A stretch of DNA of 64,000 bases. It comes from Macrostomum lignano. Lineage: Eukaryota. The notes beneath the pieces were generated by a model that searched no databases, was not told the origin of the DNA, and worked only from the letters and a program-made list of their open reading frames with translations. The translations under genes were made by a program, and so were the position numbers. This document shows positions 2,840 through 60,361 of the stretch, piece after piece; the stretch's first letter is position 1, and each line of letters opens with the position of its first letter. The stretch lies in NCBI GenBank assembly GCA_002269645.1, contig NIVC01000829.1, forward strand, positions 124,001 through 188,000, written 5' to 3'.

Positions 2840-5800
2840 TTAGGTGACGTACACGCTGGCAACGTGGGAATCCTGTAAGGCAGATCTGCCCTAGTAGGTA
2901 GGCCGTATTTTAAATCTGTCCTTTAGTTTTTTAACTTACTGAGTTTTCGTAATCCTCGGTAACGTAGCGACTAAACCTGAATTTTGAAGCCGGTTGTCTC
3001 ATCGCAGTTTGAGCTGGAGTATTTCTGCGTCGTCTGCAGCATAGCGCGGTGATCGAAATTAGCAAAGCGATTATAATGATGACGAGGACACCAACTATTT
3101 TTGTAAATAATACCGTGGGCCTCTCCAAAATTTTCTTCCGCTCTGCTTCTGTAAATTGATGTTTATCGAGTCTGATCAGACAGTGAAGTGCAATTTAATG
3201 CTCTTAGTGATATGCACTTTGCACTCACCATGGTACGATTTCAGGATAAAACTTTCGGAGAGGCTTTCGTTTAACAAACGACAGCTAATAGCTGACACTG
3301 AGATAATTGATGGTTTAATAAACAGGGACAACAGAGACGTTAACGTTCCAATACACCGAGGAGCAACTGTGTTCGTTATTTCCTATAAAATATAACTTTA
3401 AAAAATGACGTCTAAACTGGTAATTATATCAACAGTTTTATTCAAAAAATAATGCCAACCTTTTTTATTAGCATTGCGGGAATTATGGTACCATTAGACG
3501 TCCTCAGCTCACATCGATGTGTTACACTAGGGCAGGAGTTCTCGGACATGGCACGGAATTGAATTATTCCAAATGACAGCAGTCTAGGTTGAACTAATTC
3601 GAGTTTCATATTCTCTGGGTTGGCTGGAATAAAACACATCTCAGATTAATTCATTTTTAAGATCAGATTATATGAGATTAAAAACTTTCTCTCACGTGAT
3701 GGTAATACTGTCTCCTGCTCGACCTTTCGTGGGAGTCCAATGGCCCATGTGACAGTGCAAGAGATTCTGCGAATGCAGAAATTTCCAATGGATTGAATTG
3801 CTGAAGAGTCGATTATAAATTCAGATTCGACTACGTTTTGGTACATAGTCTTTAGCTGCAAGGCATAAATATGACACAACATCGGCACATGTAATAAGCA
3901 AAGCACATCCGCAAACAATATAAAATTAACACAACAAATATGTTAAATATTACTTTAAAAGTAACAGGTTGCTCTGAGCACATAGAAAATATTGTGCAGC
4001 TGGTCTGAGCATCTGCAGTGGATGAATGAACGAGTACTCTGAGAGAGCTAAGACTTTCGGTTGAACCTGACCAGGTGTCAATGAGCGGCTTTACATTGCG
4101 ACCTGAAATAAAATGAAGACCGGAAACGAATCTGAGTAGCCATTCAAATTTGGATTGCTTAGTATGTACTGTACGAGGGCTTTTCCTCTACGATTATAAA
4201 TCCCACCAAGTGTTCTAGGGCTAATTTGTTTATACACTATATCCTAACGCTGCCACCAAGTTTTTGTAGGCCCTACTTCTAGCTATTCTACCCAGATTTT
4301 ACTACAAGTTAAGACTCCTTGCACAATGAAGTATTCGTGGTAGCAGTGTCAAGCGGCAAACACTGATCTAAATTTTTTAGCTTACTAAATTCCTACTCTC
4401 GTTTTTTCGAGTCCTGAACTAGGCTATCCTGGGATGGAGTTGCCCGACTGGCCGAAAGCTTTCTGTCCTCTTACGGTTTCTCTCTCTTTCCTTCTAGTGT
4501 CAATTCAGCTTCCCAGAGTACCAAGTCAGAGGGCGCTGCTTCAACAAGGTCAAAATTTCCCAACGTCGAAAAGTAAATTATTTCACAAGGTCGAAATTTG
4601 ACAACGTTAGAAAACTCAAATAGCAGCCACTTTCACAAGGTCGAAACTTCACAAGGTCGAAATTTCACATCGAAAACTCTAGCGAGAGATTTCATAAGGT
4701 CGAAGTTTCATAACATCGAAAACTCAAATAGCAGCCACTTTCACGAGGTCGAAACTTCATAAGCTCAAAATTTCACAACGTCAAAAACTTAATATAACAA
4801 GAACCATACAGTATAGTTTTTGATGTTGTGAAATTTCGACCTTGTGAAAGTGGCTGCTATTTGAGTTTTCGATGTCATGAAATTTAGACCTTGTGAAAGA
4901 AGGTGCTTTCGACGTTGCGAAATTTCGAGTTTTAAAACCCCCAACCCCTAAGTCAGAACGCTTTGCTTTCTTAAACCGAATTAAAGAAACGGGAAACGGC
5001 GGGCGAAACTCCGCGGCTAAAATCACTTTTTATTTATAGTATGCAGAGGGAGATTAGGGTACGTGGGATGTGAAGAAACAAAATTTATGTATCACTTTAA
5101 CAAAAATAATTTTTCCGACTATAACGAAATTATTTCACTAAAACAAATGCTTCATTTAAAAAAATACGTAGCTAGACATAACAGACGGAAATTTGAAATA
5201 AGTTCTTTCAAAGGTGAATAAGGAGAATATTAAAATAGGGCCTGCCTCAGTACTTTTGCTAAAGAATGGTCGGAAACTTGCTTGCTAGGCGCGTTATTAT
5301 TTTATAAAATACCAATATGGAATACTTATAAGCCTTTCAAGCCTACTGCAAGAAGTTATAAATGGCTTCGGATCTATGCAAAATATGAAACGTAGCCGTA
5401 CTCACCAACGCTAAACTCCATTATTTTCGAACACGACGTACTCCAAGACTTTGTTCGATGTCATGCTCATGTTAATTCGGTTTTACTAGTTTTGTAAAAC
5501 CAGAAATTACAAGTAAGGTAGACAAATCAAAGTCTTCAGTAAATTTGCTCAGCCGTAAATTCACCACTTTGTTATTCATAGCTTCTATCTTCCATATTTG
5601 AAGCATATTTTTGTATCCAAATGAGCCGTAAGCGGGTGGGCTTTTTCGAATCCCCTGTTGGGATCTAATAAGCTCTCTAAAAGTTCCAATACCTGAAAAT
5701 TGATACAGAATAAGCGTTAAAATTTACCTAAACCTGTTTAAACTTAACGTACTTCTTTTCATCGGGTCCATTGCGGCAAAGATTTTTAATAGGAAATTTA

Positions 5801-7215
5801 ATTTTAGAAACTATATTACCTGGAATATTGTTGACACCGAGGAAGCCAGCTGAAATCGAATTAAACATTCTATACATGAAGGCTAGAGTTTTCCCGCCGG
5901 ACTTTCTTGAACTGGCTTTCAATCGCAACAATACTGTTCCGGTAAGCCAGAACTCAGACAGGGTAGCACTGCTTTTCGTGTTACCGTAAATGTAAACGGC
6001 GTCACTAGAAGACAAAAAATTTAGCTCCTGAAAATAAATTTTCACGGACAGAAGGGTATTTAGTACCCAGCAATGATCCCATTGGTCAGAGTTCATTGAG
6101 ATGGCTCCCTTCGTGTTGCTTTCGCTGCTCACAGTGCCTTCTGTTTGAATCAAATCAATTTTCTGCGAGCAGGCATCTAAAAATATAAAGCGAATGCCAT
6201 AACTCATAGCTTATGAGGTCATAGAAAAAATATTTCTTACATCATTGCTTCATTGCTTCATTAATATATACTAATTGATTTGTTACTGAAGCCAAGTTCA
6301 AACCCACAGTTTTCTTTTTTCTCATTCGAATAATAGATAAAAAGATGGCAGTTCTACATTTTTTAATAATTATTAACCGATCTACCATCATTTATAACTT
6401 TTTTATAAATAATTAAAATAAAACTATTTCTCACTTTCTTCAGTAATGAAAAACTTAAAGTGGAATCCGATGCTGGTTATCCAGCTGTTAGTCGAGAATA
6501 CCAGCGTGACACTGTGACGAAACTGGCGCACTTGAATACTTCGATCACCCGAGAACTTCACCAAGATGCGGCTTCCTGCGTCTGGAAGCATACCTTCATA
6601 GATTTTCAGGCAGTCATGGGCTAACTCCGTTTAAAATAATACGAAACTTATCTTTATAACGTATCCGGGCTGAACATAAAAGCTCCAAGCCGTATTAAAA
6701 TTGTTTGGGTACATGGTTTTTCCGAAGGTTGGATGACTTGATCGAATTCCGCTTCAATGCTTGATTATCTCTGTTGCGGCTGATTGGTGAGTAGAATTTG
6801 GAAAAGCGGTTATAATTTTGTGTTATGATTAGTTCAAAATTCAAGCAACTCACCCGAAAGTAAAACCTGTTGTTTAACTCAAATATAAATTGAATGCCTT
6901 TCTTTTGCACTGAACCGTCAGTTGTGAATCGAATAAGAGTTGTTCCAGTCACCCAAAACTCGGACATTACGTCGGCTCTGTGAGTCAGTCTAAATCTTTC
7001 ATAATCAGTATCGTTGGTGTCGGTGCCGACGAATATTTGTATTTTGTCGCAGCATTTTTCTAGATCCAGTTTCGAAAAGCGAATAACTTTAGTTCCCGAG
7101 GTTCGGATTACCCAGCGTACATCCAAGTTGCCCGCTTAAAGACTGCTGGAGTTTGCACTGTCAGGACAGGCAATAGCTCCTGTTGAAGTATAGAAGTCTG
7201 CGTTCGGGCAGGAAT
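2840..7215 (-). pseudogene. CUB-array paralogue 1: CUBx4 + stalk module + TM, pseudogene
   Basis: CUB1 exon starts at 7215 (SCPNADFYTSTGAIACPDSANSSSL*...WVIR...CCDKIQIF...GSVQKKGIQF). CUB2 about 6440-6780, CUB3 about 5730-6180, CUB4 about 5400-5690. Stalk exons 3954-4102, 3696-3855, 3460-3623, 3229-3382; TM exon 2940-3148; terminal exon 2840-2872 (DSHVASVYVT*). In-frame stops: TAA 7136-7138, TGA 6754-6756, TAA 6631-6633; frameshift and stops in CUB4. Confidence 0.85.
4545..4935. repeat. Foldback/MITE-like element made of TTCACAAGGTCGAAA subrepeats in both orientations, in an intron of paralogue 1
   Basis: 36-bp perfect inverted pair 4611-4646 / 4834-4869, plus several direct copies of ttcacaaggtcgaaa. 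Confidence 0.65.
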
Positions 7216-10345: not shown

Positions 10346-10347
10346 GT

Positions 10348-11921: not shown

Positions 11922-14900
11922 TCAGGTGACATAAACACCGGTAAGACTGATGCCCTGAAAATTTAAACAGTTTTTAGCATGATTCTATTGATATTTTGTC
12001 ATTATCATGTTAAAATAAGCAGGGTAATGTACAGGCCCCATAATGTATATAGTCTCTTGCCGTCAAGAGTTTTTTAAACCATTCTCTTCTTGAAGAAGTC
12101 TTTCAAGTTGCAGTTGATTGTAAGGTAACCTATCTTTGCTCCCATTAGTAGAGCTATACAGACATTGCATAATCTCCCTTATGATTTGAATTATGTCACC
12201 TACACACAGGACTCTGGCAGGAATCTCTAATTCATCTTTCAGGGCGAGCTTGCGGGTTCCTGCCAAAGCTAGAACGTATCGCTGTCGACTCTAATTTAGC
12301 TCGTAAGCTCAGTCTACTCCAGGGACCGTACTGGCTGATCGTTGTCTTAGCTAGCTGGGTACTATAACAGTTCGGTATACATCGACTGCAGTATCAACAC
12401 CTTCATCAAACCCGCAGAAATAGCTTCAATCCAACGCCAACTTCTGTCTCTGCTAGTCTATCTCCCAATTTGGACACTATATCATAAATAATCCTGAAAA
12501 ACCGCAGATTACATACCGAGTTTTCATATTCCCCAGTTTGATAATGACTGAACCTCGATGCTGAAACCGTGCTTCTGTTCACAGTCCTATGAGACCTATA
12601 TTTCTTTCGCCTGAAAAGCAGCGCAAGCGAGAGAGCTGACAAAGCAATGATGACGATGACTGCTACTGTGGATGAAGCTACAAGAGCCCATCTCTTCCAG
12701 AGTCCTGGAAGCTTAGCTGATTTTGGTGTCAAAGCAGCAGTTTGAATTTCGCCACATAGGTGCGACACAGAACGCTCCAAAAAGTTTCCTTTAAAGAGGC
12801 GACACTTAATGATTGATCCTTTGATGACTGCTTGATGAGCGAACGCTGAGAACTGTGACGTCACTGTGCTGCGAAACTCTGGTAGAACTGGGTCTGACAC
12901 GGTCTGTGAAAAAAATGTGCGATTGAGATTAAATGATGAAGTGAAATTGTTTGTGAAGTCATTTGTTTGGATGCGAACCTTTTTGATCAGTATAGCGGGA
13001 ATATTGCTTCCATTGGCCGTTTTCAGCCCACACCGGTGTATCACTCTTGGGCAGGAGTTCTCCGAAATCACACGGAACTGAAGGATGCCGAAGGACAACA
13101 ACTTGGGTTGAACTAACGTGACTGTTGCATTTTCTGGATCAGCTGAAGAGACGCATTCGATTTTAGGATTTATGACTAAATAAATCACGCAACTAATTGG
13201 CTAATTTTTCTCTCACCTGGGAGTAGAGCAACAATCTGTTCAACCTTCCTAGGCAAACCAAACGCCCAGGTAGCTATGCAAGTCACTCGATGGATGCAGA
13301 CATTGTGGATGCTTTGAATAGCTGAGGAGCCGATAACAAACTCTGATTCGACAACGTTTGGTTCCACCTGAGTTAGCTGAAAGTATGAGTCGTATCTAGA
13401 ATCTTTAGCTTTTTTTGGCGGGACTTTTACGTTTAATTTTGCTAACAAAAAGAGCTGCCATACCTGTACGAAGACATCTTCCTGGGAAAACTTCGGCTGA
13501 AATTTACAGTAGACCTGAATATCGGCTGTTGCGGATCTCACGAGCAATCTTAATGAGGATAAACTTAAAGCAGTTCCTGACCAAACTGGCACAACGGGCA
13601 ATAGTGTTCTTCCTGCAGAATTTAGGTGGTACGGTTTGTGTAATTTTACGCTTAGTATAGTGATTAGCCTTAGAAGCCAAGCATTTTTCCTATATCTCTT
13701 GTTGAACAAGATACTAAAGAACCATCGTATGCTTCAATACATGCATAGACTGTTAAAATTAGGAAATGATTACAGCATTTTACTTATGATACCTGTGGTT
13801 TATTGGTACAAAATTTTTGCCTCGCAACCTTAAAGCCCCACAATAACTCTTATCATTCCGCCTTTTTTAGATATTAGTACTAGATAAATTGAATTCGAAA
13901 ACGCACCGACACTAAACTCAAACACGAAGCTCGATAGTAGTGCAATACGGTTGATAACAAAGACAATATTGACAGCTTCCGGGAAGACAAACTCAATAGT
14001 ATGATTCGTTGCTGAATGTTGTTCAGTGCTGAGCTAAAAAACTGGAGACGATTCAGAGTGTACATGCAGATCATGCTCATCGAATTGTCTTGAAAAATTG
14101 CTAATTCGAACATTAACAACTTGATTTTGCGTCGCTTCAATATTCCAAATTTGAATCATTTGATCAAATCCAAATGTTCCAAATGCAGCCGGACTCTTTC
14201 TGAAGCCTCTACGCGATTTTATATATTCCCTGGATTCACCTCTATTACCTAAAATAAAGGATTGGTAGAAAAATACTAGAAAATTAGTTAAAATAACAGA
14301 AAAGTAAACAATTTTAATAAAAAATATTTCGTATTTAACCTAGCAATGATGTAGTCTTTAAAAGGCCTTTATTCAACACCGAAAAGTTCATTGTTTCTAC
14401 TTTTGCCAAAATGGAAGGAAAATTAATGAAATCTAATAAATTACACACACACCTATGTCAGCATGTTAGCACACAATAATGTTTAATATTTTTACAGCCA
14501 GTGCTTCATGTTCTAACTTGCAATCAACTTTTAAAAATATTTTTTTCGAGTCAGTTTCTGTGATAAAAATGCTAAATAAATAAATAGACATCTCTATAGA
14601 TATGTTTATGTTGTTATATCGTGACATTATAATAACGTGGAGCAGACCTAATCAAAACAAATTGTTCAACTTCGCTCCTGTACTTACCATTCAGAAACAA
14701 TATTCTTCTTATGCTTTGCCTTCTGAATGAAAACTCAAGCGAAGCTTTCTTGTATCCAGTTGCGTTTGCTTTGAATCGGATAAGCGTCGCACTATGGAGC
14801 TGAAACTCAGACTCTGTAGCGTTACTTGCACTTGTAAGTCGATACAGCATCCTGTCTTCCAATGGAACATCTGTGTTCCCATAAATGTAAATGAAACCGC

Positions 14901-20806: not shown

Positions 20807-22156
20807 TTAGTTCAAATAGACTTCACTGGCGGGCTGAAAGCGTAAAACGAAAGTGCAAGGCTGAATTAGATTGCGGTTTGAAAGATACGAGTAAATACCC
20901 ACTTAGTCTAGGCTTACTTACATGCTTTTTATAAGGATTTGGCTTTGGCTGTGGACGAATATTCATTTCAATTGATTTGGATCGTTTGGCTTTCAAACTT
21001 TTGAATAGAACGTAGCTAACAGCTGAGAGTGCTATTAGAGAGATGACAGCTATTGTTGATGAAGAAATGAGCAGCGGCAGCTCCCAGACTCCTGGCAACC
21101 GTGCATCTGCAAAGATCAAGCAACTCTTTACCATTAAACACAATCAGTTGGATTTTTCTTGCGGCACCACAACGCGCAGCCCAGAGTTAGTGCACATAAA
21201 GTTTTGGAGGCTGTCTCTGCAAAAAACGCTTCTGAAAATCAAATTCTCATGTTTACGAGCTCTCTAAACCAATTGCACCCCTTGCTTATGTGAACAAAAC
21301 TATATGTTTTTTTATAAAAAGGTGTGGCACTTCCAGGACATTTTTATAAGTCCCAAATATAGGCACCGAGGAAATAACAGCTCAATTGGTTTCCAGTCTA
21401 ATTTTCTATTGCTATCGCTGCAAAGTGCACTCTAACATGACGTAGTTTATTTTCTCACACTAAGCATGATTTGCAAGTAAGTGCCACACTTTATACTAGG
21501 CAGTAGACGATCTCAAAATTCCATCTCGCAAAAACCAGCATTGGTACCTAGCCTCATATCTATGGGCTGGGTATGCTCAGAGATAAACAGATTAGGGAAA
21601 ACTGCTTGCTCCTCGCTTGCTGCGGGTTCATTGACGCCGCGATGTGCGGCAGTACCAAAAATTAAATTTAAAGAAAATTTGCGAATAAGTACTACTTACT
21701 AGTGGTCTGTTGTGGCAGCTTGAGACGCTCAAAGCTACCGTCAAACAGGCGGCACCTGATGACGGCGCCTGTGATGACAGATGGTTGAGCAACCGCTACA
21801 AACTGCGACGTCACCAAGCTGAGGCACTGTGGCTCTGTTGGCTCTGTGATATTCTAGAAAATAGCAGTTGCACAGGTTATTTAGGAATCTGCTGACAAAT
21901 ATTTTCTAAATAAATTACGTCTTTACCTTTTTGATTAGTTGAGCAGTGATAGATTTGCCATCGGTTGTCTGCAGCTCGCACCGATGCTTCACACTGGGAC
22001 AGGCAAGTCTGGATATCGCCCGAAACTGCACTGCTCCAGTCACTGAGGCAAACTGTGGCTGCTTCAGATCGATGATTACTGTTTCCGGGTCAGCTGCAAG
22101 GTTATTAATGCATTCATTATTAATGCATGCATTATTAATAGCCTAACTAACTAACG

Positions 22157-22210
<54 letters not shown>

Positions 22211-22243
22211 ATAACTAACTAAATAAATAAATAAATAACTAAA

Positions 22244-22341
<98 letters not shown>

Positions 22342-22342
22342 G

Positions 22343-22379
<37 letters not shown>

Positions 22380-23282
22380 AAACAAACAAACAAACAAACA
22401 AACTAACTAACTAACTAACTGACTAACTAACTAACTAACTAGTTATCTATAGCCAGGACCTGCACCGGAGCGGTTACGAAAATTAGATTTCTCGGTAGTT
22501 GCACGTACTCTTTTGCACTACTTAAGTAGTCTGATTTTCGTTCGGCATGGCTGGTTCCAGCAGGTAGTTCCTCTGGATAAAAGCGCTTACCGCGCCCATT
22601 GGCTTTCCAGCTGCCTTAATCGTTTCCGGTGATCTTGTGTGCGTGCTTTCAGCTTGATTGGCTGCGGCAAGCAAGCTCGAAAGAGCTCGCTTCGCTCGCT
22701 CTTTCTCGCTATCTACTATCTATAGCCAGGACCTGCACCGGAGCGGTTACGAAAATTAGATTTCTCGGTAGTTGCACGTACTCTTTTGCACTACTTAAGT
22801 AGTCTGATTTTCGTTCGGCATGGCTGGTTCCAGCAGGTAGTTCCTCTGGATAAAAGCGCTTACCGCGCCCATTGGCTTTCCAGCTGCCTTAATCGTTTCC
22901 GGTGATCTTGTGTGCGTGCTTTCAGCTTGATTGGCTGCGGCAAGCAAGCTCGAAAGAGCTCGCTTCGCTCGCTCTTTCTCGCTATCTACTATCTATAGCC
23001 AGGACCTGCACCGGAGCGGTTACGAAAATTAGATTTCTCGGTAGTTGCACGTACTCTTTTGCACTACTTAAGTAGTCTGATTTTCGTTCGGCATGGCTGG
23101 TTCCAGCAGGTAGTTCCTCTGGATAAAAGCGCTTACCGCGCCCATTGGCTTTCCAGCTGCCTTAATCGTTTCCGGTGATCTTGTGTGCGTGCTTTCAGCT
23201 TGATTGGCTGCGGCAAGCAAGCTCGAAAGAGCTCGCTTCGCTCGCTCTTTCTCGCTATCTACTAACTAACAAACAAACAAAC

Positions 23283-23322
<40 letters not shown>

Positions 23323-26154
23323 CAAATAACTAACTAACTAAATAATTAACTAACTAAATAACTAACTAATTAACCAACTAACGGTCTAGTTTCGACGCTT
23401 ACGTTCTAGGAATTTAGCTTCGTGCTTCAACTCTTCCGTAGTCACTCCAAATGGCCGAATGAATCCGCACTGTGCATCCCTTGCGCAAAACTCGAAAGAA
23501 GGAAGGTTCGACGAATAAACAGAATACACAGCCCTTAAACATTGCTCATTGGAGTGGATCATCTGAAGATTGTTAAGGCATTTGCGTTAATGCTTGCTTA
23601 AAACTATCCATACTAGACAGTGATATGAATTTTCCTTGATTTACAGTGACATCGAATGATCGATTCCCGCACGCAGGCCTGAGACGGCATTGAATTGAAT
23701 AATTCGCAACTGAAGATTGAACAATTAGTTTTGTAGAGCTATTTCGAGATACTTTCCCAGACCAATGCTCAAATATTGGGTAGATCCTATGACCTAAAAT
23801 TGAATGAAATCGAAAAATTTGTTTTTGATGTCGATTACAATTGCATTCAAAGCCACGAATACTAAATGGACTGCTTCAATAAACTTCTGTCTAGATAGAG
23901 CGAAAGTCATACGACGTAAAGGTAGTATTTAGTACAACAAAAGTACAACAAAATAGTCACCCCGGCTGCAACATCCTGCCAACGTGTTACAAAGATCGAC
24001 CACCCTTGGACAAAAAATCCCAGGATCCCTTTTTGAACTTCTCTTGTTGGCTAACTTTTTGTGGGAGAAAAATCGTTAAGGGATAAAAATAAAATATTGT
24101 ATATTCGCAATGGAAATAAGCTGCATGTGGCAATACGTCCAGCCCACAGCTGCAGTATAGCTGCTGAACTGCCGAATTTAAATTTATAGAGCAAAAAAGC
24201 AGAAATTTTGAATTCTTGTGGGTTGACTTTTACAGCTGGTGAATATAGCTAAAATATGAATTCAAATGTGCAATATAATACATTCATATTTATAAATATT
24301 GAAGCACAGTCAAAGTTATTAGCTGAAAAATAACTTTCGGGATAATTTTGGGATGGTCTGGGCTATAAGAAGTATCGTAGTCTAATAAATGAGAAAAAAG
24401 AAATTCTTACCTATATTGAATTCAAAGTCGAATCCAGAATGCTTGGCCGAAACGTCTGAGCTGTACACAATCATTGCTCCACCAAGAAGTTGGTATTCCA
24501 CTTCCTTTTTCGAACTGGCCAACACATTCCGCCTGGTGCTGCCGTCCATTGTTTCATACGGGCCAGCAAATACCTGCAACTGGCCTTGGTTAAACTTGGT
24601 TGACAGATTGCCGAATCTGATCGTCACAGTTTCCGTCAGCTTTGCATTAATTACCCATATTTGGGTAAAGAACTTTGAGAAGTCATAATGTGCGTTGAGC
24701 AGTCCGTACGATCGGTACCCGTACGATCGGTACCCAGAAATGCTGCTTCTTGAGCCACTTTCTGAGTTTATTTTTTCCATGACCAACACGTACGGCAGTA
24801 TTCCTAAAATGATTATTTCATGAGAACTAGCTACCGCTTAAAGTTGCAGGATGCATGCACTTATGCAGAAAACATTTCTATAATTACCACGATGGCGCCT
24901 GGTTATAAGCAGGGGATTCATTGATCTCTGCTGCGTACTATTGGTCCTGTACGAAAACTCAACTGTCGGTATTTTAGTTGCTCTGAGCCTGATGAGAACT
25001 GACCAGGATGTGGCCAACCAGAATTCCGACGTCAATGCATCGGAATTGGAAAGCTGAAGCACCTCCTTCTCCTTGTTGGGCACATCGGTGTTGACATAGA
25101 TAAACACTTTGCCGCTGGAGTCCAGTGAGTCCAAGTCCAGTCTGTGGAAATTGATCCCAATGAACTCTCTAGCAGTGAAGAGCCAACAGATTTCTTTTTT
25201 ACCTTGACTAACTTCGTTATCGAAGGTAGGACTGCGGACTCTTCCATTACTAGCTTTTAAAACTATCGTCCGCAAGCAAGCGGCTGAAACAATACGTTGG
25301 TAATACAGAACTTTTGAAACATGTGAGAGAGTTTGTCCGGAATAGAAATTATTGATTTTACTCACACGCCTCTATAATACTAAATGAAAATTCAAATCCA
25401 TCGGTTGAATTAGTAGAATAACCACCAGTTGTAAATAGCAACGTTACACTTTCATTGAACTCCATCTCCGAGATAGCACTCTTCCCCGAAAACTCATACC
25501 GTGCTTCGCTTCCGATATTAGGCACTGTGCCCCGATAAATCCTCAGAAAGTCACGACCGGCCTGCGTCTTGAAGGTGATCAATCTAATAGTCAATAAATG
25601 ACTAGCTGGAACTTGGATGCTCCAGGCCAGCTTCATGTAGCTCGGGTAGCGGCTACTTCCAAACCCAGGGTGACTGTACCGGTTGCCACTTCGCTGTCTG
25701 ATTACTTCTGTGGCAGCTGTGTTACAAAGGCAAATTACTGTTTTAACTTAAGAAATAATGAACAGTGCAAATCATATAAACTTCTTCTTACCTGGTATGC
25801 TAATGTTGCTTTTGCGTTCAAAGGTAAACTTAAAGCCAGTCCGAAAAATGCTTCCGTCAGTGCTAAAGCGCACCAGAGTTGTGCCAGAGAGCCAGAACTC
25901 GGAGCTGACTGCATCTGCATCATTAATTCTGAATCTCATTTGGTCAGGATCGTTGGCGCCTGTATTCTCAAACAGGAGAATATTGTCTAACTTTGGTTCT
26001 ACGTCCACTTTAATAAATCTGATAATTTTTACACCTGTAGTATTGATGATCCATCGACTGTCTAAACCAGATCCATATCTGCTGCCCGACTCCTGATCGG
26101 GAGGACACGAGACCGCACCGCTATCGGCGGTTAGAATTTCACTTTTGCACGCCT
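20807..26154 (-). CDS. CUB-array paralogue 3: CUBx4 + stalk module + TM + Tyr tail, apparently intact (signal-peptide exon not located)
   Basis: Exons 25792-26154, 25366-25716, 24888-25283, 24411-24803 (CUB1-4), 23645-23793, 23403-23562, 21927-22093, 21700-21853 (stalk), 20922-21106 (TM: WELPLLISSSTIAVISLIALSAVSYVLF-KSLK), 20807-20833 (PASEVYLN*). All GT-AG, phase-compatible, no stops found. Confidence 0.8.
22143..23380. repeat. (CTAA)n/(CAAA)n microsatellite interrupted by three tandem copies of a 273-bp unit (22444-23262), inside an intron of paralogue 3
   Basis: Unit anchor ctatagccagg recurs at 22447, 22720 and 22993 (period 273); copies appear identical; CTAA arrays flank both sides. 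Confidence 0.95.
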
Positions 26155-26735
26155 CTTAAAAGGTAGTTTAAAAAAAATAAATATCTAGTGCATAAAATCA
26201 TAAATGATAAATGTCAAGTTGAGCTCCGGAATCAAGCCTCTGGATCAAGTCGGCTACAATCGATAATTTGCCAGACTAATCGACTTGAAGCGCGCCTTCT
26301 TGAAAATGCGGTTACAACGAGAAATAGTTTTTGACACAAAAATATTCTCTATGCAAAAACTTTAGGAATACAGAATGCAGGGGCTGGGACACTTAGCACC
26401 AACAATGGTGAAAGTATAGATAATTAATTTTTTGGCCAAATCTGGCATTCCTATTTCAAAGATTAGTTTCTGTTGTGGCCTTAGAATGCACATCGGTCAA
26501 GCCAAACTTAAAAAACCTATTTTACGAGCTATTAGCAACGAAGCGAGGCAACGTTTCTTAGAGACAGGGAAGGCTAGAAGGAGAGGACCTTAGAAGCAAC
26601 TATTCAACTAACACGTAAGTTCCTGTGACTAACACAGCGAGTGGAGTTGAAGACACGGGGGGCTTAATCATAGACAAAATATGCTTGGACTCGAACATGA
26701 CTTCTCACACTATAACAGTTTCTAAGAATGACAAT

Positions 26736-26935
26736 GGTAGTAGCTTAGTGGTTAGAGCGTCAGACTTAAAGGTTGGGGGTTCGATTCCCGATCCCACTGG
26801 AACAATTTGTGCCCTTGAGCAAGACACTTAACTCTGTATTGCTTCAGTTCACCCAGCTGTAAAATCAGCACCAGCATCAGCTGATGTAATTAAGAGTGTA
26901 TGTGGCGACCTCCAGCCCATGGACTAAACAGCCGT
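26736..26935 (+). mobile_element. tRNA-derived SINE with a CORE/Meta-like central domain
   Basis: A box TAGCTTAGTGG (26741-26751), B box GGTTCGATTCC (26778-26788), then tgtgcccttgagcaagacacttaactc...cttcagttcacccagctgtaaaat, similar to the conserved central domain of CORE-type SINEs. Confidence 0.75.
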
Positions 26936-29900
26936 ACGCAGCCTTCAGATGCGCTGCACAATAGCTGCGGCTGAGCTGCGCTGCACATATGCAACCGGTG
27001 TAATGACAAAGGCAAGCAACCATTTCTTAAGCGATGTTTGCCTAATATTCTAAGAAATTCAGCTAAAATTTGGTTGCATTCTATAGTCTTGATAGATATA
27101 ATATTTCTGTGGTTCTAGTCGAATTTTCTGGCAAGTTATCCATTACAGTTGGTTTGGTTTTGTCGTTGAATTTTGAGCTCCATTTCAGAGATTTAAAAAA
27201 CTGACATTAACTTTGTAACTCGTAAAAACAGAAAATCGCAACTTGCTCACCAACTGGTTGCAGTGCTGAGCGTGACAAAATTAGCAGCGCGACGCCAAGT
27301 AGCAAGCCGTTGATTGATCTGCAGCCCATCTGATGCAGAAATTGATTTAATATGAGCATACTTTCAACAAACTGCAAGTTGCAATGAATAGTTCAAAGTT
27401 TAATAAATCAGCAAGTTTCTAAGTTTGGACTGCCGCTAATGCGCTTCAGTGACGCGTTTTAAATAAACAAGGACGGGTGCAAGTGAAAATCACCAGACAG
27501 CAGCCAACTGCAGCCTTTAAGACGCTAACATTTTTCAGCCTTCCCCGAATGTGCTGGAGGTTGCACTACGAATATGTGCGGATAGAAGCGGCAAGTAAAC
27601 GTTTTTCATTCCAGCATGATTTTAATTTACTGCTCTCGTTGATAAACTTTCAATCTGGACCTATAGCGTTTCAAAAGTTTATTCATATAATGAAGCTTTT
27701 ATACATGTACTATAAGAGTAAATTTTTTTTGGACTCTGACATTTTGGTCAGAGCAAGAAGAAAGTTTCTCTTAGAGATTAAATCTGTTAAAACACTTTCA
27801 TTGCTTGCTTTTCTAGCAAAGTTTTAATTATACAAGCCTTTCATCACATGACCAAACTGTAAAAATAGCAGTAACTACGATAACAACGAGCTTGGGCGAA
27901 GTCTTTAACATTGATACAGATCTTTTGGCAAAAGAAAGCTGATGGCTACGGAAACACTACTAGGTAAATGTAGTCGTGGTTTAAGGTTAAATATTTAGCA
28001 GATTTTTCTTTGCGATTTCTATTTACGTGTAGCACTTTCATGTAGGTAGCTTTGGTTAGCAGTAAAAAACTTCGAACCTAATTGTGTAAATCCATGTAAG
28101 TTCTCATGGTGACATCAATACAGCAGCATGTTCTCATGGCTTACGCTCTTAAAGGAAATTAATAAGAGTGTGCACAGCCATTGTGTATTTTTTATTCAAC
28201 AACCTTTTAATATTTTCAATAGAATCTGTATTTGGCGATGCCTCTCAGAAAATGGTCATCTCCAGAATTAGACTTGATCTTCAATAGACTTTTAATCTTT
28301 TGAGTTGCATTTACAAAAACATTGCAGATATTATCAATAGAAGCTATACTAGGAACAAATTTGCTGTTGTTACTAACATTTTTAAATTAACACAGCCAAG
28401 TGATAATATGAAGTGAAATAATTGCTTGAGTTTTCACGGGTCATTTGCAATTTTCGGACCAGTTTGTAAACTTTATTAAACCTTAGCAATTTCAAGTTGA
28501 ACTTTCTTTACATTTATATATTTAGACCTAAAATTCCAAAAATATTAAGCTGAAGTTACGCGTAAGAAATAATACATCTGCATGTATTTAAAATAAGAAA
28601 CGGCCTTTCAATCTATGCCAGCGTCCATCAAGTGTTTCCCGAACGGAAACCATAGACAAGATAACTACTCTCGTAGAGCGAACTTCACCGGTAGACGAAT
28701 CACAAGGATTAGCAGGAATGTAAATATTGAAGGCTTCTGCAAGCGAATATAATTGGTTATTACTCGTAAGTTTTCCGATTCAATAGATGTATATAAACAC
28801 TGAATCGGAGAACTTCAATTCTAACCATATGTAACTTTAAATGAACCTGCCATTTTCCTTACTTAGTCGGGGCACGGGCAACTAAAGCAGAAGGAACCTA
28901 CACTCAAGATTTCAAGATTTAAGTTTTTTAGCACAACATCCACCGCAGTCTCGCACCTTCTGGAACTCATAGGAAATCGGGAGTGTCTCATACTGTGTAT
29001 TTTGTGCGAAAATTTATTTCCAGAAATCGGCCTCACGATTTGCCAGTATAGCGTTTGTCTTCTTTATCCATGAGTACGTAGAACGTACACAAAGCCAGTG
29101 CGCATAAATGAAAGCATTTTAGCATTATTGAATAGATGGATTGAGCTCTCAGTAAAACCAAATCAACCGACACATCGATATACTATGCAATACACAACAT
29201 AGCTGCAAGGCTTCCTGGAGTATACTGGGTGCAGATGGGAGGTGTTGCCGCCCATTCCACAGACCCATGGCAATCACGGGCAGCTGGTGCTACGATGTCG
29301 CGCAGGAAGATCCGGTGGTGCCGTCGTTCGCAGTTCTGTCCCTCTCTAGAAAGTGGGTGATCGGTCGCCCGGTAGCCCATAGGCATGGATGAGGTGGCAG
29401 AAATTCCCGTGCTTAAAAATATCGGAGAGATCCGGGTTAAAGGAGACATTTAAACATTAAATGCTTCCTTGAACTGACTAGCCATGACTTGAGATTAGCC
29501 GTGGCCACCGCCTTGATGCCCATACGGTTGAGTCCTGCGGAGGGCGGGGGAGAGGAACAGAGGACGACAGAGCTGAAATACCAGTCATCCTTACCTCTCC
29601 CTGAGCTGCGTTGCCACCCAGTGGTTAATCTAGACTGGTAGCGACAGCAGTATGATGGAGGCCACATGCAGGGGGTCAAAGAATATAAAGTGTTGCACAT
29701 CATCTCGAAATAATGATAATGAATTTCGCAAAAATCAGTATTTTATGGTATGTTGTGTTGATAATTTTGTTTAAATTCGTTCATCCTTACAAGAAATGAA
29801 GTTTTTTCACAGTTTTTTCAGAAGTTTGTGAAATTGCACAAAATAAAGAACAAGTACTGTAAACAACTAATCAGATCGAAGGCTAAAATGATTGCGCGGT

Positions 29901-32657: not shown

Positions 32658-35600
32658 TCACGTGACGTAAACTCCGGTTGAGTCATCAGGCTGAAAGTCG
32701 GATGCAAGCATGATTAATAATTTGACATTGCTGAAAATATGATGAAGTCTGGTGCCTCAAATCACATTAAAGCTGCTTACAATGCCTGCTGATTCGCCAT
32801 AGTATTGGTTACTGACTGTCGTTTGCATCTTCATTGACTCATTCACTACTGACGCATCCGGCGATTCTTTCCAAGGTGGCCACCGACCAGATCTCATCAG
32901 CACAAAGCAGGCCACCACTGCTACCAGTGCAATGATGGCGAGAACAGCCGTAGTTGATGAAGCTGCTAGCAGTGGCCGCTCCCAGACTTCGGCCAGTCTC
33001 GTCTCTTCTGTTGATGGAGTCGATATTTAAAGCAGGGCTGCTTCTTCGTGGAATAACATCTGAAATCAGCTGCGAAACTCACCAAAACCCAGTTCGGGCA
33101 GCACGAGCAGCGCAGAGCTGCCGTTGAGCAGGCGGCACCTCACGGTAGAACCCGCTACGTCTGATGGCTGAGCGAACGCTAAGAACTGCGACATTACCGA
33201 GCTGAAGCACTGCGTCCCGGTGGGCTTCGAGACATCCTGAATTTAAGCAAAACATACTATCTTGCACAAATAGCGAGCTACATAATGCTGCCAACAGCCA
33301 AAAACAACCTTCTTTATTAGCGTCGCGGGAATCGAATAATTAGTAGCCGTCCTCAGCTCACAGCGATGCCTCACACTGGGACAGGCGTGTTCGGAAACCG
33401 CACGGAACTGAATCGCTCCATTGAGTAGCCACAGCTTTGGATTAATCAACTCAAGCTGTAAGTCATTTGGTTCAACTGAAATCAATTAAAAAAGCGCAGA
33501 AACGGGCTTTGATTACATAGTTTGTTTTAAATGAATCAAGGGCCTTGCTTTTTATGCGCTGTTATGAAGGAAACTATTAGCCAGAGAGTTCAAAAGCGAT
33601 ACCTGGAGGCAATTCGCTGAATTCAATCGAATCGAGCATTCCTGGCACAGAGAATATGCAAGACACATTGCGGCTGCACACTTGACGCTGCCACTGCCCG
33701 AAGAAGTGGAATACTTTGCCCAAAGACGTCGGGACAATTCGATCCTGTGGTAGCAGGTGAAGCGACGACTGAGCTTAATAATTGATGGTGTGTGAATAAC
33801 GTGAGCAATATTGACTAGAACAAAACTATTATGAAAAAAAGTATCAACTTTAATAGGCATTCATCTGATAAAACTGTGCAAAATGGCAAATACTTTGGAT
33901 TTATCTTACAACACGCATTGGGATTTCGATGGTTCCAGTCCCACACTCCTGGTGCAGCCGACATTTCGCTGACAGGCCTCGGATGTTTGCAGCTGTTGTA
34001 AACAAAATGCGCACTGCAGCACCCGCGGTGATTCCAGCAGAATCTGGGAATCTCCATTGAATTTCTCGAACAGCTGGGATAAGAGAATGATTATTGCAAG
34101 GAGCTGAGAATCTTTTCTTTTATTTTCAATTTTTAGCATTGAATAAATCAGCTGTACATAAGACATATTTTTTCACCTGATTAGAACTCTCAAAATTCCC
34201 GCCAATTTCACATGTTTATTTGAAAACAGAGTCAGAAACGCCTAATATTCGAATAAAGTATTTCTTATTTTAGAATCAACTTTACGATGAAGAAAGTAAT
34301 AGCATGTTAGATTGCTATTTTTCGTTCAATTTCGATTCAAGTGACGTTATGCGAATATATATACTTCTTGTTCTAATGAAGTTCTTTATACTAAATTCCT
34401 ATTTTTTGTATTCATCTATGCATTGATTTCATAATCTTAACTCAACTCACGCAGTTGCATAACCGGCAGAGAATAGTTGACTGTTCCGGCTTGCTTGTAA
34501 CAAAGTATCGTGGAATTGACTGTGTCGATGAGCTCAGCCACCACAGCAAAGTCTGTCTGAACTCTGCTCACACACTGAGAAGTACGTGGCTGTGATGCTT
34601 GCTGAAGTTTTTATGCCGCAATTGTATCAGAATGAAAATACGCTAGCTGGGTATTGTAAATTGAAGGAAAATACAATTGCGTATATCTGCATATCAGTAC
34701 GGGCCTACAGTACATCGTTTAGTTGTACACGCCTATCATAGCAATTACTCTAAGTATATTATATTATGCTAAATATTTTAACTACGCATTATTACATTAT
34801 TCTTACCCGCTTCACTTGCGCAGCAGTGACTGCGCTTCCATTGAAAAGCCTCAGCTCGCAGCGATGCCTCACTCGCCGACACTCGGCTTGAGACACAGCT
34901 CGAAACCGAATCAAACCATCTGAGAGGCTCCACAGCTCAGGCTTTATCAGGCTGATTTCAAGTGAAACTGGCTCAACTGAAAGTTATTTATATGTATGAA
35001 GGAAACTAGAGCAGGATAATCATTAATCTGATACAGTTATTGTATGGCTTTGCTAATTGTCGAATTCAGACACTTTCACCTATTCAAAAATTTTTTGCAG
35101 ATCTACAGTCTCAGAAAATGATTAAATACGTTTTACCATCAGGTGCTGGTGTCGATTCAACCAGTTCATTCCTACCGCTGCCACGGAGTCTGCACGTGAT
35201 GTTTCGAATGCAGACAGCAGTATCTGAGACGATTCCAGAAAATAAGAACAATTTTTTAGCTGATCTTCGCTGTGAGTAGATCGTCTGAGGCAATGGCAAA
35301 CAATTCAGATAATTTAAGACCTCCGTAAATTTGGTTTTGATTTCAAATTAAAACATTAAAAGGTCGAAAAAGATTACATTCGCTATGCAAGATTATAAGA
35401 AAAACTTAAACCAGTAAATATAAGCAACTTTTTTCGAAAATTTAATGCACGAAAATGCACGGCTTACGGAATTCATTGCCATCTCCGAAGTTCGGCTTCC
35501 ACATTCAAGATTTAAGTAACACCTGGCTGATACATTTTGATCCAGGGAAATCAGTGAAACACTGAATTTCGAGCCGCCTATAGCCATTCTGGTCCATTTT

Positions 35601-36979
35601 GAAAAGATCAGCTTAAATTCAGGATAATCTGTAAATATAGTATCATGCTGAGTAAATATAGCGCTGTAAAAAAATTTGTGTATTTCAATTTTTTATGTAA
35701 TTGAAAGGAAATTTCTGGAAGTACTTATTATTGCTTAAAACGGTAATTCATTATACGAATAATCGATAATCCTATGGCGCATAATCCGGAGTAGAAATCA
35801 GCTGTCTCACATCAACAATGTTGACACTCGTGTGTTCTTGAAGTTACGAGTACGAGTAAATACGGGAAAAATGTTCTTCTCCTCTGCCCGTATCTGGCCA
35901 AGAAAATACATTTTATACAAAAATACATAAACTTAGTCTAGATTTTCTGCACAGGACAATTAGTGACTTAACTTCTGAACTTTCTAACTAGATCCAAAAT
36001 ATAAAAACTGAAAAAACTGAAAGATACTGTAGACTTATTGTAACACTCACAGACACCGAACTCAAATTCGAACCCTTCGTGGACAGTGCCGCTGTCAGTT
36101 GTAAAAATAAGTGTGACGCTATGCGAAAATGTGTATGATGGATGAAAACTTGTTTGCCCGCCCGATATCTCTTGCAGAGCCGTGCGCTGATATCCCGGAA
36201 CAAGTCCTGCATATATTCTAAGATAGTCGCAGCCAGATTCCGTGTCAAACTTTGTGAATCGAATGAAAACACTGAGATTTCTGGGAACGTATATACTCCA
36301 AGCCTTTTTGTAGTTATTGCTGTAGGAGCCCACATCTGCACGATGGCTCCGTCTGACACCGCTTCTCTGCCGAATGACCTCAGTAGCAGCTGAAATTCCA
36401 TTTGTCATCCGAGATCAAAATCAATCAGCAAAAGTGAACCAGAGTGTTAGCTGTTATAAACGTAAGGCATAAAATTCACCTGGAATCGATACCGACCGGC
36501 GTTCGTAAGAAAGCCGAAATCCGGATCTCGTGACAGAGCCGTCACTTCGAAACCTCACAACAAAGGGCGCATTCAGCCAGAACTCAGACTCAGTCACGTT
36601 TGCATGCACAAGTCGAAACCTCTCTGAGCTGTTTGAGGCTGAGGTCGCGTTTTCATAAATGAGCACTTTGTCGCAGCATGGCTCCACATCCAGCTTGCTG
36701 AATCGGATTCGGCTGACACCACGTGGTCGAATAGACCAGGAAACGTCCAAATTGTTTGAATACTGGCCTCCGTAGGAGGGGCACGCGATCGTTCCAGATG
36801 ACGAGGAAAGCGTCCCACCGGAGCAGCATTCTGTTTAGTAACCGAGCGTCGTTATAACAAGAGCGACTTATTTTGACTCTGATTAAAAAAGAATAAAACC
36901 TACCTGAAAATGGAAACCAACATAGCAAGCCAAAGACAGAGAGTTGAATGTAATGGAAAAATCTGGTGTCTGTTTTCAT
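32658..36979 (-). CDS. CUB-array paralogue 4: signal peptide + CUBx2 + two stalk modules + TM + Tyr tail, complete 13-exon model, 760 aa
   Basis: Exons 36904-36979 (MKTDTRFFHYIQLSVFGLLCWFPFS), 36480-36830, 36051-36389 (CUB1-2), 35468-35628, 35137-35284, 34807-34976, 34451-34601 (stalk 1), 33910-34073, 33603-33744, 33309-33475, 33083-33236 (stalk 2), 32781-33007 (TM: WERPLLAASSTTAVLAIIALVAVVACFVLM), 32658-32690 (PDDSTGVYVT*). Total 2283 nt; all phases compatible; no stops found. Confidence 0.85.
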
Positions 36980-38078: not shown

Positions 38079-38504
38079 CAAGATTCGGCAGGTGCAGCTG
38101 TAGCACAGAAGTACTGCTATTTAGCAGTGAGCATTCAATGACCGATCGTCCAATGAGCGATAGCTGAGCAACACCGAGAACTGTGAAATCACTGTGCCAA
38201 CGCACTTTGAGTTGGTGCTCGTGTTTTCCATCACCTGCGGGTGAGTTTCAAATGTAATTTTGCAGTAAGCTATATTTTGCATCGTCTAAAATGCAATCAA
38301 GGATCACTAAAAGTTACTGCCGCACAACTGAATCTTCTAGAGGTCCTTGAATGTGTTTCACCAACTCAACCGTTTAATCGGGGACGCAGGAGTGCTCACA
38401 TTATCAATGGAATATAATTTTGTATTTGGCTGGATAATATTGGCTTGAAAACCCAGAATGGCTGGTTCGAACACCGCTACGCTGTCGCAATATTTCCGTT
38501 GATT
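38079..38504 (-). pseudogene. CUB-array paralogue 5 relic
   Basis: 38404-38504: start of a CUB2-type exon (STEILRQRSGVRTSHSGFSSQYYPAKYK) ending in a stop. 38079-38234: stalk exon D homologue (KCVGTVISQFS / VAQLSLIGRSVIECSLLN) with a 1-nt frameshift. Confidence 0.7.
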
Positions 38505-40289
38505 CTAAGAAACAGAAAATGTACTTTTGAATACAGTATTCGTATGATTGATTGAAAAGCGAATTTTTATGCAATTTCATGCATCGTGAAGATGGCAGTA
38601 GCCTGGTCAGTGGCCCAGGCTCGATTCCAGGTGCAGTCGCCTGGCCGTGGCACATCAGAGCGCCGCGCTAGACCACTGGACGACCACTTCCGTTGCAGTA
38701 AATGTATTTATAGTGCTTTAGCCTTTAAGCGAATTCGAATGCTGGGTGTCAGGTACAATTTCCTGCCTATATTTGAAGTTTATAAGCCCTGGTGTTTCCT
38801 TGAACTGCAGCTTTTCTTTCTCATGATAAAGATTGGGCAAAGTTTTGTTTGATAAAATTGCAGAATCTGAACGTTTTAAAAAGCCATGCAGTTAAACATA
38901 TCAGTTGATATATTTCGGTAAAAATATTATGATTTCTGTATAACAACCTGTATAATCTGTATAACTGTTACTATTCGTTAATAAATTAATAGGCTTCATT
39001 CACTAGACTCATCATTAAGGGCTGACACAGAATCGTAGAAGTTTATGCCGATTGCTAAAAAGTTTTCTATGGGTTTAGGCAATTTGATGAAGACAGAAAC
39101 AGCAGAACGTGGATGACGGAGAATACATGTATAAATTTAATGAGCAAGGAGCAATCCAAACTCTAAGAAAGCAGGCGAATCAAAGGAAAGAAGGAGCAAG
39201 AGAAGAACGGTACGAGTAAAGGCAAGCAGACATAGACCGAAGAGCTGCTAGGTTAACGGCACTGTCATCAGAGATGTACCCGCGTAATCGCCGAGCTGCG
39301 CCCATCTCCCAGCATTGAGAGCAAACGTCGCTCCACCACGTCGGAGCGATCGCGTAGAGAAGCTGAAGATTCCAGTCTTGCAAAAAAACGCTGCAGGCGG
39401 TGGCGAACTTCCACTGAGTCAGAGGGCCACCAAAAAGGCGGCTCTGACGGACTAAGAATACGGGAAAGCTCTGAGACGTATCGAGAATTTGATTCAGCTG
39501 CCAGTGATGTCGGGGCGCAGCCACGGGGCGCAATTTGAGAGCAGCTGCTGAGGCTCGGATCCCTGATCGGGAGCTGGAGATGCTGTGGATGCGCTCACCG
39601 ATCTGCACTGTCTTTGAAGAACGAGCTACATAGATGGCCCGATTTCGGGTCATCCCGCCAGCCCCGAAGCAAACGGCTGCGCGTTTGCAAAAGTCCATAG
39701 CAAATCAACCATCATCTCAGCACACCCGTTCCCGACGGGAATGGCCCGATTTCGGGTCAGTGTCTAACAATGTTGCAAAGAGTAGATTACGCAAAAAAAT
39801 ATTATTAGCTTAGAGATGTCATACCTGTAATTATAATAACTCGTTTATAATAAAAATACTGCGGCAGTTTTCAACAAAACTGTAAAAATTGCTTTTACGA
39901 AGTAAGCTTGTTCCCAATGAAGCCGGAATAGTCTAATTACATGACTTATTAGGGACAGTTTTAAAGAGGGAAATGATTTACAGACTGAAGCATCTGCAAG
40001 ATACGAGTAAGCAGGCTGGTACAATGGGTAGGTATTTAGGTAGGTAGATAGGTAGGTAGATAGGTAGGTACATGCGGGTAGAGGATGAAATGAACGGCCA
40101 GTTAAGGGATTTGCCTGATTAGGAGACTCAGAACTGTGTTAGATGTACTTAAACGACTGTATTTAAGTCGAAAAAAGTTCATACACGAATGCAATGCATA
40201 ATAAACAGCAAATAACGAATAGACCTTAACATCAACAAATATCCGATTACGTAATGACGTTTTTGATTTGTCTAATGGTTTAAAGGTAA

Positions 40290-41600
40290 AAAATCTAATA
40301 GCTAGGCAAATTGCTGGGACTCCCGGGCAGGCTTTGCAAACAAAAACGGTCTTCTTGACCTGGCCAGCTGCATGGCACACACGACATCTTTCGCCTGGTC
40401 GGACCTGGTCTCCGATTCTTGGAGCCTTGCTTGGTGAATGGGCGTCGGCACCATCTCCTCCACCAATAGCAAGAGCACCAGCATCACCTGGTGCAGGGCC
40501 GCGTCTTCTGGCAGCCCCAGTGTCCTTGTCCTTCACAAGACTCTTTATTGCCATGCAGCCTCAAAATGCAGAAAAGTCTTTGTGCCACCTGACTGTCGGT
40601 AGATCACCCATGAGTTCCGCGCAGTCATCACAAGAAGATGAAATCCCAGCGTGTGGAACCAGCTCATGCTCTTTCGGTTCGCGAGGTACGGGTGCATTGA
40701 GACGTTTTTTTATACGCCAGGAGGTCACCTGAATGTGCGAATGAAGATGAAATTGGATGTTTGGTGACAGCCTGCAAATGCCGCGATCCTTCTGCACCGT
40801 CCCGGTCAGTAGCGTATAGTGTTGCAGCAACCAATCGGCCAGCTGGCGAGATGTGAACTAACCATCAGTGAATGCATGATGTCCAAGATGGAGGAGACTG
40901 CTTGCAGCACAGCTCTGCAACAACTCTCTCGCTCATACTCAAGCCTTGACATCCGAATTCTTCACCAAACTGTTGATTAACCTCAGGAGACGTGAGTATG
41001 ACGAAGTTCCATAAATATGAACTCTCAGTCTTGCAGAGGCAGTACAGCTCTATGCCATACTTGCTTCGCTTAGACGGGATATATTGCTTGAAAGCAACTC
41101 TCCCTTTGTAAAGCACCAGCGTCTCATCAATTGTAAGTCGCTGCCGGGGCATGTAGTCTTGCTGCAAAGACTTAGAAACGGAGGCAAGACAGGGGCTGCT
41201 TAAATCTGTCTCTTGATAGAGAGAAATGCTTGAAAAGAAACAGGTCAGGTCGGTGATCAGGTCGGTGGACCATTAGCTGGCTATTTCTGTCTCCTTGTCG
41301 ACTCCCATGAGCAGCGCAATACCCACCAACTTTCGAGCTTCATCAGTTGAGCAATCACGCCAGTTTAACACCAGCTTCGGTACAGCATCCCGGGTCTCTG
41401 CCTCCTGAAAGATCTTACAAGCTTTTACGATGGCTAATATCTTCAAACAGTTGATGGACAAAAATAGCTTCAGGAAAGCTCCTCCTTCGTTTCCATCCGC
41501 AGCATGTGGAGAATGCCAGTCAGGTTGTGCACTTGGGGTACCGAGAAATTCAAGTATCCATTATCTAGAAAATAACTATTTTCCATTATCTATTCGAATA
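40290..41600 (-). mobile_element. Degenerate piggyBac-family transposase
   Basis: LTIDETLVLYKGRVAFKQYIPSKRSKYGIELYCLC, GHHAFTDG*FTSRQLADWLL...LTGTVQKDRG, and a C-terminal Cys-rich CRVCH...TVFVCKACPGVPAIC, split by stops and frameshifts; TIRs not identified. Confidence 0.9.
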
Positions 41601-50382: not shown

Positions 50383-50718
50383 TCAGAACACACGGAGGAC
50401 ATGTCCCTCGCCACTGTGTTGGAGTTGAGTGTTGAGGTTGGGGGAATGCGCTTTAATGTACAGCGCTTCAAGGATCTGGAGTTTGGAGTCAAATGAGCAT
50501 TGATCAATGGCTTTGAAGCGCTTTTCGGGTTTGCAGTTGGAGCAACTATTACACCCTAAGAGATGGTTTTGGATAGCCGACGGTTTGAGCCAGTGCTCCC
50601 TGATTCTAGTGTGAAGGTGCCTTTTTGTCTTCCCCACGTAGGAGACGCTCTGGTCATCAGAGCAGTTGAACTGATAAACGACACCAGCACGAAGAGCACA
50701 GGGAACACGTGACTCCAA
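50383..50718 (-). mobile_element. Penelope-like element GIY-YIG endonuclease C-terminal segment
   Basis: GVVYQFNC...YVGKTKRHLHTRIREH...SAIQNHL...LQILEALYIKAHSPNLNTQ. Confidence 0.9.

Positions 50719-53688: not shown

Positions 53689-60361
<6,673 letters not shown>

Follow-up and report, generated by a model that had tools for sequence, protein, structure and literature searches.

Conserved motifs are common in the tails of receptors. Ephrin-B ends with YYKV and syndecan with EFYA, each with a hydrophobic last residue and PDZ binding, and neuropilin has a conserved C-terminal element, SEA. Here we analyzed a 64,000-nt stretch of the genome of the flatworm Macrostomum lignano (GenBank assembly GCA_002269645.1, contig NIVC01000829.1, positions 124,001 to 188,000; hereafter the window), in which four paralogous genes on the minus strand, g1 to g4, all end with a Val-Tyr tail motif. 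The g4 gene is BOX15_Mlig014562g1. As a conserved Tyr-centred motif in a receptor tail, the Val-Tyr ending belongs to a familiar kind, but its consensus is unusual.

The M. lignano proteins resemble the receptors with immunoreceptor tyrosine-based inhibitory, switch or activation motifs (ITIM, ITSM and ITAM), CDCP1 and DCBLD2 in their type-I ectodomain of CUB and/or Ig-like domains, their short unstructured tail, the conservation around a Tyr with a second Tyr a few residues upstream, and the tandem gene cluster with pseudogenes. However, no [ILVS]xYxx[ILV], TxYxx[VI] or YxxP is present, the Tyr is mostly two residues from the end, and there is no sequence relationship past generic CUB similarity. 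With ephrin-B and syndecan they share an invariant Tyr among the four C-terminal residues of a single-pass protein whose remaining tail is less conserved, but the M. lignano tails close with Thr or Asn, and one of the paralogues is extended by three residues. Neuropilin, NETO, LEV-10 and SOL-1 are alike in having N-terminal CUB domains, a single transmembrane (TM) segment and a short tail with a conserved C-terminal element; there is no orthology to them, the Ig-like pair was found in M. lignano only among the 1.84 billion representative proteins searched, and the tail motif differs. The YxxPhi and NPxY signals are also centred on a cytoplasmic Tyr, and one unlinked paralogue (P0017) contains YVTL while another paralogue type (P0014) has an upstream NPVY. 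In contrast, the Y+3 position is lacking in the four window copies, and the terminal motif is never NPxY.

The Val-Tyr endings and their paralogues

The codon pattern V-Y-[VL]-[TN]-stop was found only four times on both strands of the 64 kb, each time at the end of one of the four genes (Table 1). These four sites are real and far above the chance expectation: first-order Markov simulations of the window (200 runs) gave a mean of 0.28 occurrences and a maximum of 2. An earlier note on this DNA, made from its letters, had given the translations and coordinates of the four endings, and all of them are exact. The AG acceptors and phase-0 GT donors are also present. A pyrimidine-rich acceptor ending in cag stands before all four segments, and a phase-0 GT donor closes every TM exon (g1, YENS/GTAAGT; g2, YENS/GTATGT; g3, YKKH/GTAAGT; g4, SAGI/GTAAGC). 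The earlier note had called the segments terminal micro-exons, three of them of exactly 33 nt. Rather, each is the coding start of a 3′-terminal exon that must run on into the 3′ untranslated region (UTR); the internal micro-exon class does not apply because the segment holds the stop and the annotated models show no donor after it. Only weak variants of the poly(A) hexamers were found 3′ of the stops.

The ending of g4 is annotated. A composite of the g4 exons as query retrieved the GenBank protein BOX15_Mlig014562g1 (P0001, 759 aa) of M. lignano, which is encoded on contig NIVC01000829.1 of the same assembly and ends with NQYYGESAGIPDDSTGVYVT. Exact spliced mapping of this protein onto the window gave 13 coding exons from 36979 to 32658, of which the last, at 32658-32690, reads CCT GAT GAC TCA ACC GGA GTT TAC GTC ACG TGA on the minus strand; the junction before it reads SAGI/PDDSTGVYVT. 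The GenBank annotation of this assembly was made with TransDecoder from transcripts alone, assembled either de novo or with RNA-seq guidance (PMC5730564), so the last junction of g4 rests on assembled transcripts. PDDSTGVYVT also ends four UniProt models of near-identical g4 homeologues elsewhere in the assembly.

UniProt models of g4 homeologues join KKSPDASV straight to PDDSTGVYVT (window 32838-32846, minus strand). Judged from the sequence of the TM exon, this junction would use an upstream GTGAAT donor and would remove 22 residues of the tail, among them the YY. It could represent alternative splicing or a prediction artefact.

The g3 gene has no annotation on contig NIVC01000829.1. When the exons of an annotated homeologue (P0015) were transferred to the window, g3 proved collinear with all splice sites kept. 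In P0015 a 27-nt terminal segment follows a phase-0 intron, and both annotated g3 homeologues, P0015 and P0009, end with KPNPYKKHPASEVYLN (PASEVYLN). Public protein records already contain endings of the g4 and g3 types. Proteins of the g1 or g2 type are absent from all databases searched. The four genes had been described as full-length paralogues. This holds for their exon complement, which in g1 and g2 was checked by homologous exon segments, but not for their reading frames, as only g3 and g4 are intact in the window.

We found two further paralogue types. The fifth, BOX15_Mlig034133g1 (P0017), is unlinked and lies on contig NIVC01000900.1. Its TM exon closes in phase 0, and its terminal coding segment has 39 nt and encodes NQVSEVYVTLPN before the stop (L002 14783-14821). 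The end codons are GTT TAC GTC ACG TTA CCT AAC TAA. The TTA stands at the place of the stop TGA of g4 and g2; therefore, one base change explains the Leu-Pro-Asn extension, which turns the C-terminal YVT into YVTL, a canonical YxxPhi. The Tyr had been said to be always third from the C-terminus, and this fails in P0017, which ends with EVYVTLPN. The sixth type is represented by the UniProt models P0014 and P0023, which end with NPVYTDNIEVYVT (NIEVYVT); no genomic locus is on record for P0014. The conserved core over the six types is [S/T/I]-[G/E/S]-V-Y-[V/L]-[T/N], which is mostly but not always C-terminal. All tails have a second Tyr 7-15 residues N-terminal of the terminal one, in the contexts EDYENS, GEYENS, NQYYGES, NPYKKH, NNSYLT and NPVYTD.

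The motif is kept in six paralogue types whose tails are otherwise about 20-45% identical, and when five tails are aligned, no cytoplasmic column other than Val and Tyr is invariant, which bears out the earlier statement that the rest of the tails barely align. Among the paralogues the motif codons vary at third positions only (GTG/GTT/GTC, TAC/TAT, and ACC/ACG for Thr). When the nucleotides of the g2 and g4 3′ regions are compared, the best local match is precisely ACCGGTGTTTATGTCACCTGA against ACCGGAGTTTACGTCACGTGA, with 18 of 21 positions identical and all three differences synonymous and at third codon positions. Alignment of the 60 nt 3′ of the stops is no better than that of shuffled sequence, and the 60 nt 5′ of the segments show weak similarity around the acceptor. 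The synonymous-only codon changes next to flanks that do not align indicate purifying selection on the peptide. The suggestion that the motif is selected is thus supported at the peptide level, and the pattern disagrees with recent gene conversion or a nucleotide-level signal.

Architecture and distribution of the proteins

The predicted layout of the family is a signal peptide, two (g4 and P0017) or four (g1-g3) CUB domains, one or two Ig-like pairs, a TM segment and a tail. P0001 has a hydrophobic N-terminus and matched the Pfam CUB domain (PF00431) in two stretches with an E value of 2.8e-18 and 66.7 bits (cut-off 21.4). The nearest solved relatives of its CUB domains in a PDB search were generic CUB domains of cubilin and PCPE-1. 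The module of about 210 residues between the CUB domains and the TM segment is encoded by four exons and is duplicated in tandem in g4, whose two units (window 33083-35628, minus strand) each code for one Ig-like pair and have exons of 161/148/170/151 and 164/142/167/154 nt. Two extra CUB exons take the place of the second Ig pair in g1-g3.

The AlphaFold model of the 210-aa module was all-beta with two beta-sandwich domains (pLDDT 79, pTM 0.67), and its top PDB matches by Foldseek were Fab chains with two Ig domains (E value of about 4e-6, TM-score 0.40-0.48). No Pfam Ig match was found for this membrane-proximal module, so that its likeness to Ig is predicted at the fold level only. Near the C-terminus there is a single hydrophobic 19-mer (Kyte-Doolittle value 2.2-3.0) followed by R/K-rich sequence, and each protein has 8-14 N-glycosylation sequons (NxS/T). 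The hydropathy and the basic residues are those of a type-I single-pass membrane protein with a predicted cytoplasmic C-terminus. Tail length is about 36-62 residues in the family and 48 in P0001.

Among 1.84 billion representative proteins, a profile of the membrane-proximal Ig pair gave 10 matches, all in M. lignano and none outside it, and these included the g3 homeologues and two further paralogue types. A query of the concatenated g1, g2 and g3 proteins gave generic CUB matches only and no M. lignano relatives. The proteins are lineage-restricted type-I receptors. We rejected the possibility that they are orthologues of neuropilin, NETO or CDCP1, as the Ig-pair profile was confined to M. 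lignano and the PDB matches were to generic CUB domains. Our literature search found nothing relevant on the six gene identifiers or on M. lignano CUB proteins, and no paper on these genes or on the Val-Tyr tail motif.

Candidate functions of the tail

The terminal motif matches neither the PDZ nor the YxxPhi, ITIM/ITSM or 14-3-3 mode III consensus. PDZ ligands need a hydrophobic last residue (V/I/L/F/A/C) and a class-specific residue at −2; classes I-III were rejected, as the last residue is T in g1, g2, g4 and P0014 and N in g3 and P0017. The YxxPhi rule calls for a bulky hydrophobic residue at Y+3. It was rejected for g1-g4 and P0014, in which two residues follow the Tyr, and only P0017 (YVTL) fits. 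The ITIM ([ILVS]-x-Y-x-x-[ILV]) and the ITSM (T-x-Y-x-x-[VI]) were rejected because Y−2 is G, S or E and Y+3 exists only in P0017, whose Y−2 is E. In 14-3-3 mode III ligands one or two residues lie between a phosphorylated Ser or Thr and the C-terminus; here the Thr is itself the last residue and is missing in g3, so this class was rejected too. The sequence of a Grb2-type pY-x-N ligand, with Asn at Y+2, fits the terminal Tyr of g3 only (YLN), the others having YVT, and the upstream Tyr of g1 and g2 (YEN). Small, hydroxyl or acidic residues stand before the terminal Tyr.

The best joint explanation, which we consider rather probable, has several parts. The segment at 32658-32690 is the coding start of the 3′-terminal exon of a type-I membrane protein gene, BOX15_Mlig014562g1. 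A phase-0 intron at a common position has been inherited across the family and sets apart the last 8-12 codons with the motif, and purifying selection on the peptide maintains the invariant Val-Tyr. Most likely the cytoplasmic Tyr, probably when phosphorylated, would contact a shared cytosolic partner, for example an adaptor of the SH2 or PTB type. The tail may plausibly serve in docking or sorting; the phosphorylation of its Tyr, the partner and any signalling output are what we infer. As P0017 tolerates its Leu-Pro-Asn extension, a reader that needs a free carboxylate at a fixed distance is argued against.

Several points weigh against this explanation. Most SH2 domains also read the +3 position, but in most members only two residues follow the Tyr, and the motif fits no curated class. 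Three further residues are tolerated in P0017, and L-N replaces V-T in g3. The conservation comparisons cover paralogues of one species, M. lignano. Moreover, g1 and g2 keep the motif despite premature stops; therefore, its presence alone is no proof of present function.

The main rival is that the motif is a phosphorylation-independent sorting signal, for endocytosis, basolateral targeting or export from the endoplasmic reticulum, that is read by coat adaptors. Its position at the distal end of a short and otherwise unconserved tail would suit such a signal, as would the YVTL of P0017 and the NPxY/NxxY-like upstream Tyr of some members (NPVY in P0014 and NNSY in P0017). However, five of the six paralogue types end two residues after the Tyr and so lack the Y+3 position, and a C-terminal T or N is unlike the known C-terminal hydrophobic export signals; we regard this rival as unlikely. 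It is decidedly less credible that the common ending was merely inherited or homogenized, by descent or gene conversion, and has no present function. All copies are indeed paralogues within one genome, two of the four in the window (g1 and g2) bear nonsense mutations yet keep the motif, and few residues are involved. But neither the UTR flank nor the remainder of the tail can still be aligned, the differences within the motif are synonymous only, which is not expected from recent conversion, and the motif is also kept in P0017, which is unlinked and much more divergent.

The last junction might also be an annotation artefact, with mRNAs reading into the intron (g4, SAGIVSSFNVI-stop; g1, YENSVS-stop). 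Read-through does give short alternative endings, and ab initio UniProt models differ in the upstream donor used. Against this, the GenBank models come from StringTie, TACO and de novo transcripts, and independent models for the g4 homeologues, the g3 homeologues and P0017 agree on the terminal segment, which makes an artefact highly improbable. Finally, the constraint might act on nucleotides rather than on the peptide, as a splicing enhancer, a stop-codon context or a 3′-end processing signal, since the segment lies directly 3′ of the acceptor and includes the stop codon. This is hardly conceivable when third positions change freely without altering the amino acids, the stops differ (TGA/TAA) and one was lost in P0017, and no Rfam family or tRNA turned up in scans of the window.

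A bolder form of the docking explanation, that VYVT-COOH would be a new class of extreme-C-terminal phosphotyrosine dock in a birth-and-death family of CUB-Ig proteins, restricted to Macrostomum and expanding in tandem, that would act as an immunoreceptor-like or recognition-receptor-like system in a basal flatworm, seems to us quite doubtful. If Val-Tyr does serve in docking or sorting, it would give experimental access to a lineage-restricted and so far undescribed family of receptors in a flatworm model that already has transgenesis and RNA interference. Its significance past M. lignano is modest, as receptor tail motifs are common and the feature is partly in public annotation. The cluster also shows how such families evolve: duplicated exons alter the domain number, with two or four CUB domains and one or two Ig pairs, nonsense mutations disable copies fast, and one changed base in a stop codon makes a tail longer.

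Features of the cluster and its surroundings

Table 1. Coordinates in the window of the coding features of g1 to g4.
Feature	Position	Strand	Basis or remark
g1 terminal coding segment, DSHVASVYVT-stop	2840-2872	minus	translation
g1 last intron, 67 nt, phase 0 (inferred)	2873..2939	minus	
g1 TM/tail coding region, ends YVTEDYENS	2940..3125	minus	5′ limit approximate
g1 in-frame TAA, CUB2 exon	6631..6633	minus	
g1 in-frame TGA, start of CUB2 exon	6754..6756	minus	
g1 in-frame TAA, CUB1 exon	7136..7138	minus	
g2 terminal coding segment, GISLTGVYVT-stop	11922-11954	minus	translation, alignment with g4
g2 last intron, 562 nt, phase 0 (inferred)	11955..12516	minus	
Second terminal-exon-like open reading frame (ORF), in g2 last intron	12191..12211	minus	SCV-stop-VT-stop; Tyr codon is TAG
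g2 TM/tail exon, ends HYQTGEYENS	12517..12716	minus	5′ boundary inferred from sequence
g2 in-frame TAG, CUB4 exon	14034..14036	minus	GAG in homeologue (L003, ~22728-22730)
g3 whole coding sequence, 11 coding exons, 817 aa, intact	20807..27359	minus	exon transfer from P0015
g3 terminal coding segment, PASEVYLN-stop	20807-20833	minus	annotated homeologues P0015 and P0009 end likewise
g3 last intron, 88 nt, phase 0	20834..20921	minus	exon transfer
g3 TM/tail exon, ends KPNPYKKH	20922..21106	minus	exon transfer
g4 whole coding sequence, 13 coding exons, 759 aa	32658..36979	minus	spliced mapping of P0001
g4 terminal coding segment, PDDSTGVYVT-stop	32658-32690	minus	GenBank protein P0001 ends identically
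g4 last intron, 90 nt, phase 0, GTAAGC...TTTCAG	32691..32780	minus	spliced mapping
g4 TM/tail exon, ends NQYYGESAGI	32781..33004	minus	spliced mapping, hydropathy

The window's cluster has a collinear copy on the contig of P0015 and P0009 (L003), 92-97% identical to it overall. The terminal segments of g3 and g4 are identical in the two copies and that of g2 has one synonymous change, which is too close to be informative. In g1 the splice sites and the terminal motif are kept, despite three stops in otherwise well-conserved CUB exons, and by its sequence g1 looks like a recent pseudogene. The g2 homeologue in L003 is 97-99% identical, and the single in-frame TAG of g2 could mean that this is a null allele or a young pseudogene, or it could be an error of the assembly. 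The counterpart in L003 of the cryptic ORF in the unusually long last intron of g2 (24550-24570) is intact, reading SCVYVT-stop after an in-phase AG. This ORF may be the relic of a duplicated or alternative terminal exon.

The g3 intron between Ig-like exons (window 22143-23382) contains three 273-bp tandem repeats (99% identical) bordered by (CTAA)n and (ACTA)n microsatellites. Between g2 and g3 there is a minisatellite (18718-19643) with a 25-nt unit repeated 22.7 times (99% identity) and then an 18-nt unit repeated 21 times. An isolated fragment 5′ of g4 (38407-38667, minus strand) resembles the start of a CUB2 exon (STEILRQRSGVRTSHSGF), and is probably the remnant of a fifth family copy.

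A Ty3/gypsy-type long terminal repeat (LTR) retroelement lies at about 55150-59880 on the plus strand, with a gag zinc knuckle, an aspartyl protease, reverse transcriptase, RNase H and integrase. The repeated ORF text at about 55151-55426 and 59660-59881 suggests the LTRs of a Ty3/gypsy-type element. Remnants of mobile elements were found at 40102-41167 (minus strand), 50383-51504 and 8500-10430 (minus strand). They include a piggyBac-like transposase fragment adjoining a weak, sub-threshold zinc-finger match, a pair of GIY-YIG and reverse transcriptase typical of Penelope-like elements, and a reverse transcriptase fragment between g1 and g2. At 46329-46706 on the plus strand we identified an exon of a ubiquitin-conjugating enzyme gene (UQ_con, E value of 1.5e-29); apart from this gene, the GenBank record calls no other within 10 kb of g4.

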